Shown here: one piece after another, positions 13,430 through 20,787 of the stretch
How positions within the stretch are numbered: position 1 is the stretch's first letter
Layout: each line of letters starts with the position of its first letter
Source: Ginkgo biloba
Lineage: Eukaryota > Plantae > Ginkgophyta
Length of the DNA: 20,787 nucleotides
Reading direction: 5' to 3'
NCBI GenBank assembly: GCA_024626585.2
Contig: JANKJI020000002.1
Location: forward strand, 226,087,184-226,107,970
Notes under the pieces: model-generated
What the model saw: the letters and a program-made list of their open reading frames with translations, nothing else
What the model was told of the DNA's origin: nothing
Databases searched by the model: none
Position numbers and translations under genes: made by a program

Positions 13430-13631
13430 CGATGCACCTGCAAGTCAAAGTCTCGGGGACGGTTGTTCTCGTCACTTATTCCCAGATATGCCACTTGCAT
13501 TAGTAAACTCTTTTGCCCTATGAGAAAATGTATTTACTGTGCTTTTCTGATCTATTTATTGGCAACCACGACTCGTCTTTGGAAACCTACAATTGCAAAT
13601 CCATACGAATTCATTGCATCGTGCAGCAGCA
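13430..13631 (+). promoter_or_regulatory. Probable proximal promoter and 5' UTR of the 2OGD gene
   Basis: TATA-like TATTTAT at 13553-13559; W-box (TTGACT on the minus strand) at 13443-13448; E-boxes CACCTG at 13435-13440 and CACTTG at 13492-13497; CpGs are retained from about 13390. Motifs this short also arise by chance. Confidence 0.45.
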
Positions 13632-13901
13632 ATGGCGTCTACTCTAGTCCACGTAACAGCAGCTTCTGCTCATCAGAAAGCGGATGAATACCCTGCTCAT
13701 TACAAAGGAGTGCAAGATCTGGTGGATGAAGGCATTGACAGCCTCCCTCAGATTTATGTCAGACCTCCAGATGACCGCCCTGTTGATGACTCTCTTGAAG
13801 ACCAACTCCCCTTGATAGACGTCTCTCTCCTCAATGGTGAACGCCGATCTGCTGTTGTGCAGGCCATAGGCCACGCATGCCAAGAATGGGGCTTCTTCCT
13901 C
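13632..13901 (+). CDS. 2OGD exon 1 (aa 1-90, MASTLV...WGFFL)
   Basis: ATG at 13632; donor CTC|GTAATT at 13901/13902; a T-rich intron follows. Confidence 0.92.
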
Positions 13902-15037
13902 GTAATTCTTACTTCCCTCACTTCATTATTACTTGGCCTTTCCTTTCCTTTCTTTCTTTTTTTTTTTTTTTAAATAAATTAATTAGTATTCTAATTTTTT
14001 TTTCTTCTAACTGAAAACAGGTGAAGAACCATGGCGTTTCGACGGCCACCATGGAAGCAGAGATGCGAGTGGGTCGCGAGTTCTTCCATCTTCCCTCGGA
14101 AGAGAAAATGCGTTACTTCTCACTCAAGTCTGAGTCTCCGTTGCGCTATGGCACCAGCTTTAACGCCAAAGAAGACGATGTCTTCATCTGGAGAGATTAC
14201 CTCCGCTATTCATTCCATGATTTGCAAGAAATTGCGCCATTTTGGCCTGACAAGCCCAAAGATTTCAGGTACGTCTTACGGTATTTAAAAATAAAGGGAA
14301 ATATAATTGTAATTTATGTTTGTAATTTATAATGGTAATTTATAATTACAGGGAGGTTAACGAGGAATTCTGTAAGCAAATAAAGGAGCTTGGGAGCAAA
14401 CTTCTGGGGGCAATATCAGAGAGCTTGGGACTTGGTAGCGACTACATAGACAAGGCGTTTGGTGAATACTATCAGTACGCTGGATACAATTTCTACCCTC
14501 CCTGTCCGAGTCCGGATCTAACTCTTGGAACTCCAAGCCACACCGACATATCAGGTGTTACCATTTTAATGCAGAACGAGGTGCCAGGCCTCCAAGTGTT
14601 GCACAACGATCGTTGGGTTACGGTGCAATCCATACCTAATACACTTGTAATAAATCTTGGAGACATGCTGCAGGTAAACTCAACTCATCATCTTATGTTA
14701 ATTTCCTGAAATAATTATGTGATAATCTTAGATCTAACCAATGATCTGTTTCTCGTAATATGTATTTGTTTTTGCTGTGTGAGAGCAGGTTCTAACGAAC
14801 GGCAAGTACAAAAGCGCAGAGCATCGGGCAGTTGTGAATGGGAACCAGGAGCGCATATCAGTGCCAACCGCTTACGGTCCATCGATGGAGAGTTTTATTG
14901 CTCCTGCCCCGGAGCTCCTCGACTCTTCTCATCCTGCCATTTACAAGGGCTGTTTATTTGGAGATTACGTGGCAGCTGTTCGTAAGGGTTTTTCCAAACG
15001 GAAGGGCCTTCTCGATTCCCTCAAAATAAGCAATTGA
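13632..15037 (+). CDS. Fe(II)/2-oxoglutarate-dependent dioxygenase (DOXC class; DMR6/DLO-like to DOXC37-like), 4 exons, join(13632..13901,14021..14268,14352..14673,14789..15037), 1089 nt, 362 aa
   Basis: Four ORF-track fragments splice into one open frame through GT-AG introns 13902-14020, 14269-14351 and 14674-14788 (phases 0, 2, 0). DIOX_N motifs: LPLIDVS, ACQEWGFFLVKNHGV, REFFHLPSEEK. Other motifs: WRDYLR, NFYPPCP, HTD (H236 at 14539, D238 at 14545), distal H292 (14822), RxS (R302 at 14852, S304 at 14858). ATG lies in a good plant context (gcaATGGC). No internal stops. Confidence 0.96.
14021..14268 (+). CDS. 2OGD exon 2 (248 nt, VKNHGV...KPKDF-R)
   Basis: Acceptor aaacag|GTG preceded by a T tract; donor AG|GTACGT; completes the GFFxVxNHG motif. 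Confidence 0.95.
14352..14673 (+). CDS. 2OGD exon 3 (322 nt, contains NFYPPCP and HTD)
   Basis: Acceptor tacag|G; donor CAG|GTAAAC; the frame fits the phase-2 end of exon 2. Confidence 0.95.
14789..15037 (+). CDS. 2OGD exon 4 (VLTNGKYKSAEHRAVVN...RIS...KISN*)
   Basis: Acceptor gcag|GTT restores the family motif GDxLQVxxNGxYKSxxHRAVVN; TGA at 15035-15037. Confidence 0.95.
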   Translation, partial: VLTNGKYKSAEHRAVVNGNQERISVPTAYGPSMESFIAPAPELLDSSHPAIYKGCLFGDYVAAVRKGFSKRKGLLDSLKISN

Positions 15038-15870
15038 TGATGAAGCAATCTGAAATCACTATAATAGTAGTTTGAAAGCGTGCTGAATAAGTCTCAGGAT
15101 AAATACATTACTCTTTTATGAGACATTTTGAACTTTCCGTGTGAGCTTTTTCGCAAGCACAGACATTCGGTTGTTCTTATCTATATTATGTGGTTTCGGA
15201 GTAAATTTATGAGTATTTGTATTTAATTTGTGATAGAAATATGGCAAATTGTTTCGTTTTATTTATCAAAAAAAAATGTCCATTTTTATTTTCTATGTAA
15301 AATTAGTTCGATGAATAGAGGAGGTGGAAAGAAGAAATTAAAGATACTGGTGATGTTGTTGATAGAACTGCATGGCATATGTTTTGTCATACGTTACCAC
15401 CAAAGACCTGTTTATTAGCGTCGTTTATATTTCACATTCCATGATTTTGAAAACGATAATCAATAAGAGGAATGTTCAGTCCCAGTGGGAACCATGCTTG
15501 CTAGAGCGCTGTGTACAAATGGCAACATATACACACGCAATATTGATATTAATTATCACCTTCTGGNNNNNNNNNNTGCTGCTGTCGGAATGTGTTGGTA
15601 TGGATTCTCCATTATGTAATAACAAGGGGTTGTTTATCGACTATTTTAGTGCTTACCATTGCTTTATTCATGGCAAATAATTGCCCCTTTCATATGAACA
15701 AAGCTCTTCATAATAAATGACTACAATAATTCCTAGGTGTCATAGGCCATGCTATCGCAATTACAATATTGAAGATCTTATGTCACTTTAAGCGACCGAA
15801 TGAATGGAAAGAGAAGGTTATGGAAGGTCTATTCAACAATTTTTTTGGGGGGATTATCTTTGGCAAATAA

Positions 15871-16010: not shown

Positions 16011-17215
16011 ATTATAAAGTTCAATTAGAGAAGAAAAACATTCAAAACTCAATTTTTATTTAAAATTCAAATGTGAAAATCTTATGCAAGCTAGAATTTT
16101 TTTTAAGCATTTACTTGTCACAAATGGCATTTATTATTTAATATTATTTACTTTTGAAATGAGATAATGATGGTTAATCAAACATGCCTATTCTTTAAGT
16201 ATATAGTATAGATAAAAAAACACGTTAACTAAGAATGTCACACATGCATGCATACTTATATACATATATTAATAATAATTAATAATAACCACNNNNNNNN
16301 NNNNNNNNNNNNNNNNNNNNNNNNNNNNNNNNNNNNNNNNNNNNNNNNNNNNNNNNNNNNNNNNNNNNNNNNNNNNNNNNNNNNNNNNNNNNCATAGCCA
16401 TATGTGCTATGCACCACTCCACTGTACATCATGTGCATAAGTGAGTCTAGGCCCATTGCATAGTAATTTCTACTAATGTAAAGCATGATTTATGCATGCA
16501 CCTACTCCATTATGCTATCCTTTCCCATGACCACTCTAAAAAAATATCCATGTCATGGGAACACTAATTTTCCTATTCCATTGATAAAGCCAATAAAAAG
16601 AATGCACAAATTTAAACTAACCTACACATCCATATGACCATACCCAATGCTCATTGTAATGGACTCCTCTCTCCTATAAGTATCGATGGCACATATGGAA
16701 GCAATGTTGCATAAATAAACTATCATACTTGTTATCATCACTAACATAGAAATACATATCTTTAATGATATATTGATCATTAAGGGTGCTCTAAACTCTA
16801 TCAATCTCCAACATCATATGCCTATATGTGACATGTACTAAGATGGAAACTGTTGACTCTAATGTTTTCATACTTGTCTATGTTGAGCCACACCATGAGT
16901 GGACTATAATTTTTGAATTGGGTATATGGAAAAACAGAAGCCAGGTCTCCCATTTTGGTTTGTAATAGGTTGCCACAGAGGTAAAAATGGATTCGGGGGG
17001 GACTCTTTAAGTTTTCCTTTAAATATTGAAGTTTTCTGTAGCATTTCATCATGATCACAAGGATTATTAGAGGCCACAGTGGTCAAAAAATTTGTAGGGG
17101 GTTCCATACATATTGTCATGCATAGGGGGCATCATGGGTTCCTTTTCCCGTGCCCTACAAAAAGAACTAAGTGTAAAATTGACTAAGTATGGCCGCGAGG
17201 GGATCCCCCCCTCGT

Positions 17216-18103
17216 GATGGAACCATGTGGCACCATCATAATACCCCTATGGCCCACCCAAAATAAATTCAAAAAGTGAAATGTTCAAAGGGGCCATAGG
17301 GGGATCATCCCCCATAATGGTGCCATGTTGTGCCATCGTGGGGCCCCCGTGCCCTATCCCATTCTAAAGTGNNNNNNNNNNNNNNNNNNNNNNNNNNNNN
17401 NNNNNNNNNNNNNNNNNNNNNNNNNNNNNNNNNNNNNNNNNNNNNNNNNNNNNNNNNNNNNNNNNNNNNNNNNNNNNNNNNNNNNNNNNNNNNNNNNNNN
17501 NNNNNNGTGGCATGTGCTCTAATTAACGAAGGAGGGGAGGCCCCTCCCCCTCATGAGGGAGCAAATCCCTCAGATCCCACCATGTGGCAAGATGTTGGGT
17601 CCCCACCTCTCATGAGGGAAAGGGCCTTCCCAAATGAACATTTAAACTATGGGGTGTCATTTCCCTTGATGGTGCCACGTGGCATCATCGTGGCATCCCT
17701 ATAATCCAATCCCCAAGTGGAAGGAGAAAGGGAAGCCTCTCCCCCCATGGGAAGTGAGTCCCTAAGATCTTACCACATGGAGAGATCTCATGGCCTTTCC
17801 CCTCGTAGGTGGGAGGGACCTCCTAGATAAAAATAAAGGGGGTATGAGGGCTCATCCCCCGTGATGATGCCATGTGGTATTATCACAAGTTCCTCGTGCC
17901 CCACACCCATAACAAATAGTTTTTGGGGCCCCGCATTCCCATTTTAATTTTTTTTTAAAAGGGGACACGATGGCTCTATGTGGTGCCATCGCATGGCCCT
18001 CATAGCCTACAATTATAAATAAAGGGGAATTGGGGCCTCGCGGCCCCAATTCAAAAGAATTTTTTTCTAAAAGGGGAACACAATGGTGCCATGTGACACC
18101 ATT
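17216..18103. repeat. GC-rich array B of ~100-bp-spaced 22-bp palindromes (GATGGTGCCACGTGGCACCATC and GATCTTGCCACGTGGCAAGATC consensus types)
   Basis: Cores at 17216, 17316, then the gap 17372-17506, then 17573, 17668, 17766, 17863, 17969 and 18082. The spacers contain additional inverted repeats. Confidence 0.8.
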
Positions 18104-20787
18104 GCACAACCCCTCCCCATGACCCCCCTATACACAATAGAGAACAAATAGAAGGATCCCACTGACTCGACCTTGTGAAGGACTGGTATTCCATCTCNNN
18201 NNNNNNNNNNNNNNNNNNNNNNNNNNNNNNNNNNNNNNNNNNNNNNNNNNNNNNNNNNNNNNNNNNNNNNNNNNNNNNNNNNNNNNNNNNNNNNNNNCAG
18301 CGTATTATAAATTTTTAATTAAGGATAAATTTCTTCCAAAAACTAATATTAATTAGAGATTCATCAATGTTAATATGATTTTGTGGTCTTCCTCAAGCAT
18401 CCAATAATTGAATAACGCCTTTTACCAACTTTTGAAGCCATATTTGGATGTATCTAGTTCACTCTTTTCTATATTATTGTTCAATGATCTATGAAATTAT
18501 AAAATATCATGTAATAATATTTATTATACAAACCAAAAATATCTAATCTTGTACCATCAAGGTCCCTAACATTTCCACCAACATTATCAAGAGGCTACCA
18601 TAAAAATACAATCCCCTTATCATCAAGGATGTAAGTATTTATAGAATAAATGTATATTCTAATAATCAAGTATAAAATTTACAGTATCACCTAATTTATA
18701 TGTAAAAAGGTAAATTTAGCTCAAAAGTTAAAATATTTCTCCTAAATTTGACTTCAAGTTGGGGTTTTCTTAAAATTAACAAAAAATGACTTTGGATAAA
18801 AAAATGGATCATAAAGTTTCTTCATTTCACTCCTTTTATGTAATTCAGGTAACCTATTTCTAGAGAAATTAAATTCCATAGAAGTCCCATTATATAATAT
18901 ACAATCACCAAAATAAATCTAATTTTTTATAGGTTATGATATAGACCCTAATAGGAGGAAATTTAATGGCGGTTGGAGGTGAGTCAAGTTATATTTGAAT
19001 AAATATTAAATAACCTAATAATATTGGGATATCATTTCAACTTGATTTAGTTTAACTAAGCATCAGGATTCTACTTTTATGACAATACAAAGAAACTCTA
19101 AGATAAATTAGTATTTTTATTCTTTGAATACAAGGCAAATCCAATTTATTTGTGTATAAAAACTCTAGATTACTTGTATTTATGTTAAAAATTAATTAAT
19201 GTGATAGTTTATGTAGATTTGTTTCTCGTTTATTTGTATTTTCTTATTTTTGAATCCCTTAATATTTCTTATTTTGCATTCAAATGTTATATGAAATCAT
19301 AGTTTACCCTATGAAAGAAGACATATANNNNNNNNNNNNNNNNNNNNNNNNNNNNNNNNNNNNNNNNNNNNNNNNNNNNNNNNNNNNNNNNNNNNNNNNN
19401 NNNNNNNNNNNNNNNNNNNNNNNNNNNNNNNNNNNNNNNNNNNNNNNNATAGTATAGATTAAAGAGTTTCTTTCTAATACATTAATACTATTAGATAATA
19501 GTTAAAGCATATATCTTATTAGTTTCATAGTATATTTTCCTAAGTGTGGAAAAAATATATAATTAGCATATTGATGGGCCACCAGATATTTAAGTTTAGA
19601 GTAAGTTTAGTTTTTTGTTAAATCAAATTGCATGTTCTTGAATCATTTTTGTTAGTATGATGGTTATATGGAGTGTTGATGGAGATGTCACAAATTTTAG
19701 TTGCTTTGAAACATCATATTTTTTACTTTAAAAAGGGATTTTAATAATAAAACATTGGTTCTTTAGTATGTGATCTATGGATTTCATAACTAAGTGTAAT
19801 TTATATTTTATAAATCATTTTAAAAATAATAAAATCATAATATGACATGTATATTATAACAAGTCTTAGTGGGGCAAGTAGAAATTGATGGAAGTTATCT
19901 CATAACATGCTACTTTGACCTTAGACACCATATTAGGGTGAGAATGAACAAAATTTTAGAAAAACAACCTTTAAGAGGTTATTGAACCAAAACTAAAGAT
20001 AAAANNNNNNNNNNNNNNNNNNNNNNNNNNNNNNNNNNNNNNNNNNNNNNNNNNNNNNNNNNNNNNTTTTAATCATTTAAGTAAAAAAAAAAAATAAAAT
20101 CAATAACAACAAGTACACATATAACTTTTTATTCTAAGTATGCATTGAAATATTATAAGATGATAATCATTTGTCATAGTTGTATATTACTATGTATATG
20201 TCTACACACACACATATGTACATAGTATTATTTTGTTAAAAATTTAGCAAAAAAATTTCATATTATCTTCATCGAATTAATAATAGTTAGTATTGAATTA
20301 AACATAATTAGTCTTGAGATAATAGTAATTTATTATGATTCAAATACTTATATTATTATTTTTTATTTGTATTAATAACTATTTTATTATTAGCATTTAT
20401 AGTATATTTATTTTCGATTGGTTTATATTTAAGCTATATGGATGAATTACTTAAAGGCTTATTTTTAATATAATTACTGTGTGCATTTCCTCTTATATAT
20501 TAAAGTAAGAATCCCATACATTTGTCAACTTGACTTCCATATAAACCTCTTTGATAGTATACCTTCGTGTTTACTTTGATTACCTATATGATTTTTCATC
20601 CACGCCAATGTCATATTTGATTAACTCTAAGGTGGAGGAGCCATATTAATCCATAATCTCCATGATGGTGGACCTTTATTGATCCATAATATATATGATG
20701 GTATTCAAACATGGGCCACTATAGAGGTAATAAAAAAATAAATAATTCCACCATTATAGAAATAATTGGTCAATATGTAGGTCTAAT

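Follow-up and report, generated by a model that had tools for sequence, protein, structure and literature searches.

A transcribed Ginkgo biloba dioxygenase gene, Gb_00285, from an uncharacterised lineage that appears to lie outside the DMR6/DLO clade

The named plant proteins most similar to the gene described here are mostly DMR6-like oxygenases, and DMR6, DLO1 and DLO2 are classed as DOXC38 (Kawai et al. 2014, to the extent that this scheme is cited in PMC8839085). For related Fe(II)- and 2-oxoglutarate (2OG)-dependent dioxygenases (2-ODDs), individual pocket residues have been tied to function. F140, L204, F298 and I335 of OsHSL1 are 'critical herbicide-binding' residues, the L289F exchange moves H6H from epoxidation to hydroxylation, and the equivalent of Phe304 of anthocyanidin synthase (ANS) in AtFLS1, F293, is a dihydroquercetin-binding residue. 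Here we compared with these systems a gene on a 20,787-nt stretch of Ginkgo biloba DNA (assembly GCA_024626585.2, contig JANKJI020000002.1, positions 226,087,184 to 226,107,970), hereafter the window. A reading of the letters alone (the original prediction) had described an intact 2-ODD gene at 13632-15037 with a spliced product of 362 residues, with an altered substrate pocket and a possible role in the taxane pathway if the host were Taxus. The gene structure and all residues numbered in that prediction were confirmed, with introns supported by RNA. The window protein was identical at 361 of 362 residues to the public Ginkgo biloba model Gb_00285 (P0270); the lone mismatch, V242I, corresponds to a G>A change at 14557 that is also present in RNA runs. 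We consider it quite probable that Gb_00285, a transcribed gene of four exons that stands alone in the window, encodes a soluble DOXC dioxygenase of an uncharacterised lineage outside DMR6/DLO, whose substrate, at a guess, is neither salicylate nor a flavonoid.

Placement within the dioxygenase family

Judged by its domains, motifs and predicted fold, the window protein appears to be a plant DOXC-class Fe(II)/2OG-dependent dioxygenase. Each of the four exon peptides passed the curated Pfam thresholds, those of exons 1-2 for DIOX_N and those of exons 3-4 for 2OG-FeII_Oxy. N219, Y221, H236, D238, H292, R302, S304 and A308 were present at those numbers, which leaves the iron triad (H236/D238/H292) intact along with R302/S304 and N219/Y221 of the 2OG site; in a 63-sequence alignment H236, D238, H292 and R302 were invariant and S304 nearly so. 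An AlphaFold2 model was confident across the core (pLDDT 90, pTM 0.89), Foldseek gave TM scores of 0.83-0.86 to ZmHSL1A, ANS, JOX2, T6ODM and H6H, and the fold is predicted to be the canonical plant jelly-roll (double-stranded beta-helix) of this family. A look-up in the ESM Atlas returned generic 'Fe2OG dioxygenase' clusters only. RNA reads and contigs showed that the gene is transcribed and spliced. The intact enzyme with a full set of iron and 2OG residues that had been proposed, and predicted to be active, is thus borne out as far as sequence and transcripts reach.

Searches used the four exon peptides, one alignment carried the exon peptides as separate rows, and Gb_00285 served as the full-length proxy; the joined 362-residue protein was used for local BLAST, alignments and trees. 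Among 5.8 billion proteins, the closest were Ginkgo paralogs, Picea sitchensis A9P021 (60% identity) and transcriptome proteins (54-61%). No other protein in this search exceeded 50% identity, and the next matches (at most 49%) were mostly named DMR6-like oxygenase (44-49%). Identity to the Ginkgo paralogs was 93% for Gb_04746, 92% for Gb_27607, 67% for Gb_04356 and 64% for Gb_04355, and the 90% cluster of Gb_04746 included both Gb_27607 and Gb_00285.

In a 60-row maximum-likelihood tree the window gene fell in a clade of 14 rows (support 100/99; the focal clade), which also held Picea A9P021, five further genes from Ginkgo and 7-8 transcriptome proteins, the latter being contigs from SRA runs SRR9647861, SRR8274964 and others. 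A Selaginella pair was sister to this clade in the same tree (98/94). The seed-plant DLO/DMR6 proteins formed a separate clade of 30 rows (100/99), with angiosperm DLO-named proteins, a Magnolia protein with DMR6-type motifs, Ginkgo genes of its own (Gb_17241, Gb_17232, Gb_32170 and Gb_32875) and members from Taxus, Cryptomeria, Pinus and Araucaria. Taxus was represented by just two proteins, KI387_004460 and KI387_014369, both of them in the DLO clade, and neither Taxus nor Cryptomeria proteins were found in the focal clade. No angiosperm entered the focal clade in a 278-row FastTree tree. Because the focal clade is separate and held no angiosperm in the FastTree tree, we do not regard the gene as a DMR6/DLO ortholog; the phylogenetic check proposed with the original prediction returned two separate, well-supported clades. 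The focal lineage, found in Ginkgo and Picea with Selaginella as sister, appears to be related to the DMR6/DLO salicylate-hydroxylase clade and to lie outside it. The gene had already been annotated; no flowering-plant member of its lineage was found.

Several public names in this part of the family deserve caution. A Sesamum protein named 'DMR6' was tried as a DMR6 reference and dropped: it fell outside the DLO clade, and its motif RISIAVGHGP does not match what we take to be the DMR6 motifs, so that the name looks misassigned. Conifer 2-ODDs of the focal and neighbouring lineages have been named 'GA2ox1' and 'GA2ox11' by authors (the P0317 cluster with Pinus tabuliformis AHW42451.1, and AHW42461.1; PMC8839085). 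The solved GA2ox3 was only a distant match (120 bits vs 234 for HSL1), and these names look unreliable. P0103 (MEJ4834266.1), a plant-type DOXC protein filed in NCBI as Enterococcus faecium on a 1.2-kb contig, shared a 90% cluster with a Zanthoxylum armatum 'flavanone 3-dioxygenase' and probably represents plant DNA that contaminated a bacterial assembly.

The substrate pocket and candidate substrates

Ala308, the site stressed by the original prediction, stands six residues after the 2OG-binding Arg (R+6). In an ungapped alignment it corresponds to OsHSL1 F298, H6H L289 and ANS F304, a match with functional residues that makes the focus on this site well founded. In all three of these enzymes the residue has been shown to influence which substrate is taken or which reaction follows. 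R+6 was Ala in 13 members of the focal clade, Gly in one and Ala in Selaginella, and it was Phe in 43/43 DLO-like proteins (27/27 from gymnosperms, 16/16 from angiosperms); the proposed difference from the DMR6/DLO pocket thus holds for the DLO-like proteins compared. At the other OsHSL1 pocket positions, F140 becomes R152, L204 becomes Y215 and I335 becomes R345. R152, the Arg of WRDxLR, did not vary within the focal clade and hardly varied among DLO-like proteins, and the focal clade differed from DLO/DMR6 at 215 (H to Y/I/L), 308 (F to A) and 345 (W to R/Q). Only three columns separated the two clades strictly (focal vs DLO): 220 (F/Y), 259 (D/G) and 308 (A/F). The C-terminal F-W pair of DLO-like proteins (F in 26/27, W in 24/27) is replaced by V344/R345 here and by L/Q in the rest of the focal clade. 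Residues other than Phe also occupied R+6 in neighbouring lineages, with Gly in the Sesamum type, Ala in a Cryptomeria 'flavanone 3-dioxygenase 2', and Pro in Picea A9NQA3 and in the cluster with Pinus tabuliformis 'GA2ox1'. A non-Phe residue at R+6 is accordingly an old state in that part of the DOXC tree and does not reflect recent remodelling.

These comparisons bear on whether the enzyme is a hydroxylase of salicylate or a close benzoate, from a gymnosperm/lycophyte lineage sharing the role of DMR6/DLO in salicylic acid catabolism. The similarity to DMR6-like oxygenases among named relatives, the conservation of R152 at the OsHSL1 F140 pocket position on both sides and the stress induction of the gene (see below) all speak for it. 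However, the gene was placed outside the seed-plant DLO/DMR6 clade, where Ginkgo is represented by four other genes, and it departs from DLO/DMR6 at 215, 308 and 345, three of the four pocket positions defined from HSL1. We regard a salicylate hydroxylase as unlikely, though worth some weight.

A second set of changes is private to three Ginkgo paralogs. The strings RISVPTAY, HTDI, GTPSH, QYAGYNFY and WRDYLRY, from which pocket remodelling had been proposed, were all present. HTDI, GTPSH and QYAGY were confined to Gb_00285, Gb_04746 and Gb_27607, and the remaining focal clade had HSDP, GL..H and Met at 216. That part of the proposal stands as a lineage-specific change; Ala308 does not belong to it, being shared with the clade and Selaginella and, as Gly, Ala or Pro, with neighbours. 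The three paralogs shared 24 fixed changes where 9 or more of the remaining 11 clade members agreed on a residue (12 in exon 2 and 8 in exon 3), including P157D, Y179F, M216A, P239I and P266S at near-universal positions of the whole alignment, and the branch leading to them was long (0.27).

Gb_00285 carries a published label. In a salt-stress study of Ginkgo seedlings it was listed as a flavonol synthase (FLS) and was induced at 100 mM NaCl in RNA-seq and quantitative PCR (qPCR) (PMC7570044); the qPCR primers of that study match the window at 13720-13742 and 13838-13859. The dihydroquercetin-binding residues of AtFLS1 are H132, F134, K202, F293 and E295, with ANS equivalents Y/F/K/F/E, and the same set here reads Y150, R152, G217, A308 and G310. 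The FLS label fails because the three strongly conserved flavonol-binding residues are all replaced. An FLS or another flavonoid 2-ODD (ANS, F3H or FNS I) would agree with co-induction of the gene with PAL and two other FLS-labelled genes (PMC7570044) and with the flavone synthase side activity reported for DMR6-type enzymes (PMC8839085). Beyond the lost binding residues, ANS scored below HSL1, F6'H1 and JOX2 in a sequence search of PDB. The clade was found in Picea and not in Cryptomeria or Taxus, a pattern that does not track the plants that make biflavones. We consider a flavonoid substrate very unlikely. Neither the CYP90J paper nor a Ginkgo flavonoid review contained a characterised Ginkgo flavone synthase or 2-ODD akin to Gb_00285.

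An equally small probability attaches to an oxidase that tailors terpenoids, a Ginkgo counterpart of the taxane idea, acting for example in terpene trilactone metabolism. In its favour, T1betaH-184, T1betaH-686 and T9ox tailor diterpenoids in Taxus (PMC12240809), so that the original prediction was right about Taxus 2-ODDs; a small R+6 residue would enlarge the space next to the iron; and the pocket of the three Ginkgo paralogs has changed in a lineage-specific way. The taxane reading itself was rejected, as the near-identity to Gb_00285 makes the source Ginkgo biloba and not a member of the Taxaceae, and no Taxus protein was found in the focal clade. Nor did any result back the idea that a smaller residue makes room for a bulky diterpenoid. 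Against a Ginkgo terpenoid, no terpene synthase, P450 or other gene was found in the 20.8-kb window, and Ala at R+6 is common to Picea and Selaginella, neither of which is known to make ginkgolides. Nothing in the results supports a diterpenoid, salicylate or a flavonoid as the substrate.

We return to a DOXC enzyme with a substrate of another kind. By established family chemistry, decarboxylation of 2OG would yield an Fe(IV)=O species, which would abstract a hydrogen from a small-molecule substrate and lead to hydroxylation, possibly desaturation or ring chemistry. The retained pocket Arg (R152) suggests a small polar or acidic metabolite, at a guess neither salicylate nor a flavonoid; the small residue at R+6 may leave room beside the iron, the enzyme may act as a stress-responsive oxidase, and the three close Ginkgo paralogs would have been retuned further.

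Several points weigh against this reading. The DMR6/DLO clade was defined by names in public records and, for DMR6 itself, by its motifs, Arabidopsis DMR6/DLO sequences being absent from the tree. The root is uncertain: the first outgroup rows, P0145 and P0068, belong to the neighbouring non-Phe group, into which they fell in the larger tree, and for that reason only unrooted splits were relied on. No characterised member of the focal clade was found, and salt induction rests on one paper, which mislabels the gene (PMC7570044). Finally, the loss of near-universal residues (P157D, Y179F and P266S) could reflect relaxed constraint rather than retuning.

In its full form, this last point makes the gene a redundant duplicate drifting with weak or no specific function, in keeping with the long branch to the three paralogs and the residues replaced along it. 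Yet its open frame, splice sites and catalytic residues are intact, it is transcribed and spliced, the three paralogs carry the same changes and are near-identical over residues 72-362, and the structure model has high confidence throughout its core. We give drift hardly any weight, and retuning after duplication is favoured over relaxed constraint because of the intact frames, transcription and a confident model (pLDDT 90).

A bolder extension of the preferred reading, which we hold to be distinctly doubtful, is an old DOXC lineage with its own substrate and reaction, lost in flowering plants and perhaps in cupressophytes, of which a recent Ginkgo triplet has been retuned toward a Ginkgo-specific reaction. 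If true, the retuning of Gb_00285, Gb_04746 and Gb_27607 would rest on some two dozen fixed changes, including an Ile beside the iron-binding Asp and an Ala for a near-universal Met, and the enzymes might oxidise a precursor of the terpene trilactones, a ginkgolic acid (an alkyl-salicylate) or some other metabolite typical of Ginkgo. R152, Y215, A216, I239, A308 and R345 would be the first residues to mutate. Most plant DOXC genes, of which there are hundreds per genome, are labelled by weak similarity only, and the 'FLS' label is corrected here. Gb_00285, in itself not surprising, is a reasonable candidate in screens for Ginkgo specialised-metabolism enzymes.

Gene structure, transcripts and surroundings

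The start ATG (13632-13634) and stop TGA (15035-15037) on the + strand enclose a coding sequence of 1089 nt for 362 residues with no internal stops. Transcript mapping covered 2,101 letters of the window. The features are as follows.

13571..13631, +: 5' untranslated region (UTR), minimum extent; X15/X16 contigs start at 13571/13572 and continue into exon 1
13632..13901, +: exon 1 coding, residues 1-90, from ATG 13632, variable N-terminus and start of DIOX_N (Pfam E=1e-07)
13902, +: GT donor of exon 1; joint 13901->14021 in two runs
13902..14020, +: intron 1, 119 nt, GT..AG, with a T-run; skipped in X15 and X16 contigs
14021..14268, +: exon 2, residues 91-172 and two bases of codon 173; DIOX_N (Pfam E=2.3e-13)
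Within exon 2, +: WRDYLRY, W147-Y153; R152 codon at 14204-14206, aligned to OsHSL1 F140
14269..14351, +: intron 2, 83 nt, GT..AG; joint in 7 raw RNA reads (X24) and in X15 and X16 contigs
14352..14673, +: exon 3, residues 174-280 preceded by the third base of codon 173; 2OG-FeII_Oxy (Pfam E=1.6e-19)
Within exon 3, +: N219/Y221 at 14488-14496; H236-T-D238-I239 at 14539-14550; polymorphic V242 at 14557
14674..14788, +: intron 3, 115 nt, GT..AG; joint in 6 raw RNA reads (X24) and in X15 and X16 contigs
14789..15037, +: exon 4 coding, residues 281-362 and stop; 2OG-FeII_Oxy (Pfam E=1.3e-05)
Within exon 4, +: H292 at 14822-14824; R302 at 14852-14854; S304 at 14858-14860; A308 at 14870-14872 (gct)
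15038..15322, +: 3' UTR, extent reached by transcript contigs (X15 to 15246, X16 to 15322)

All three introns were skipped in contigs of X15 and X16, runs taken by guess to be RNA, and introns 2 and 3 in raw poly-A RNA-seq reads of X24. Other X15 contigs (depth 6 and 18) crossed introns 2 and 3 unspliced (14241-14378 and 14646-14814), and could be unspliced RNA or DNA borne in the library. Two variants were present in RNA runs X24 and X16, G>A at 14510 (S226N) and G>A at 14557 (V242I). Asn226 is the state of Gb_27607 and Ile242 that of Gb_00285 and Gb_27607; the variants could be alleles or result from cross-mapping of paralogs. Reads of RNA run X21 over 14860-15090 matched at 95-99% only and diverged totally past 15028, where 36 reads had a common alternative 3' sequence; some loose ends resembled library primer. 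The X21 variants 14989 T>C, 14995 C>G and 15011 C>T agree with Gb_04746/Gb_27607, whose residues 355 and 361-362 are different, and at least one close paralog is therefore also transcribed.

Differences between the window protein and Gb_04746 were concentrated in exon 1: 22 of 25 fell within residues 1-71 (13632-13850), and residues 72-362 were about 99% identical. The ancestral EYPAHYKGV motif was kept in the window copy and reads ENPVRCIGV in Gb_04746 and Gb_27607. Either gene conversion homogenised exons 2-4, or exon 1 changed fast in the other copies.

Ns take up about 1.9 kb of the window. Searches of the 20.8 kb returned no other open reading frame (ORF) recognisable by Pfam, no Rfam match and no second 2-ODD fragment, and a biosynthetic gene cluster in the window was rejected on these empty results. 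The gene is solitary there, and the window therefore gives no sign of a metabolic gene cluster. At 16500-18200 the G+C content was 0.40-0.42, vs 0.21-0.30 nearby, with ORFs of 70-125 residues. Three N-free ORFs of this stretch had no significant Pfam match, a search that left out the longest, N-interrupted one (17330-17704); the stretch may be a decayed repeat.

Comparison with known systems

DMR6, DLO1 and DLO2 resemble the window enzyme in their DIOX_N and 2OG-FeII_Oxy architecture, in overall identity (44-49%) and in WRDxLR with the pocket Arg R152. They differ from it in having Phe for Ala at R+6, Tyr for Phe at 220 and, near the C-terminus, F-W for V-R. The best match among solved structures was to rice and maize HIS1 and HSL1, which hydroxylate beta-triketone herbicides (PDB 8X7D, 8X6Q, 8X7C and 9GI5; for HSL1, E about 2e-68, 36-38% identity, TM 0.85-0.86). 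Pocket positions of HSL1 map one to one, but HIS1/HSL1 belong to a different DOXC lineage, and F140/L204/F298/I335 stand against R/Y/A/R in the Ginkgo enzyme. ANS and FLS (PDB 1GP4-1GP6 and 2BRT; TM 0.83-0.84, about 31% identity) share the iron and 2OG residues and a Tyr at the ANS Y142 position; the flavonoid-binding F144, K213, F304 and E306 of ANS are R, G, A and G in the window enzyme. Picea sitchensis A9P021 (P0192, 60% identity) and the Selaginella moellendorffii '2-oxoacid-dependent dioxygenase' (P0075/P0154, 47%) belong to the same lineage and have Ala at R+6 and Phe at 220 as here. Both retain HSDP, Met 216, Pro 157 and Pro 266, whereas the three Ginkgo paralogs have changed at all of these sites.

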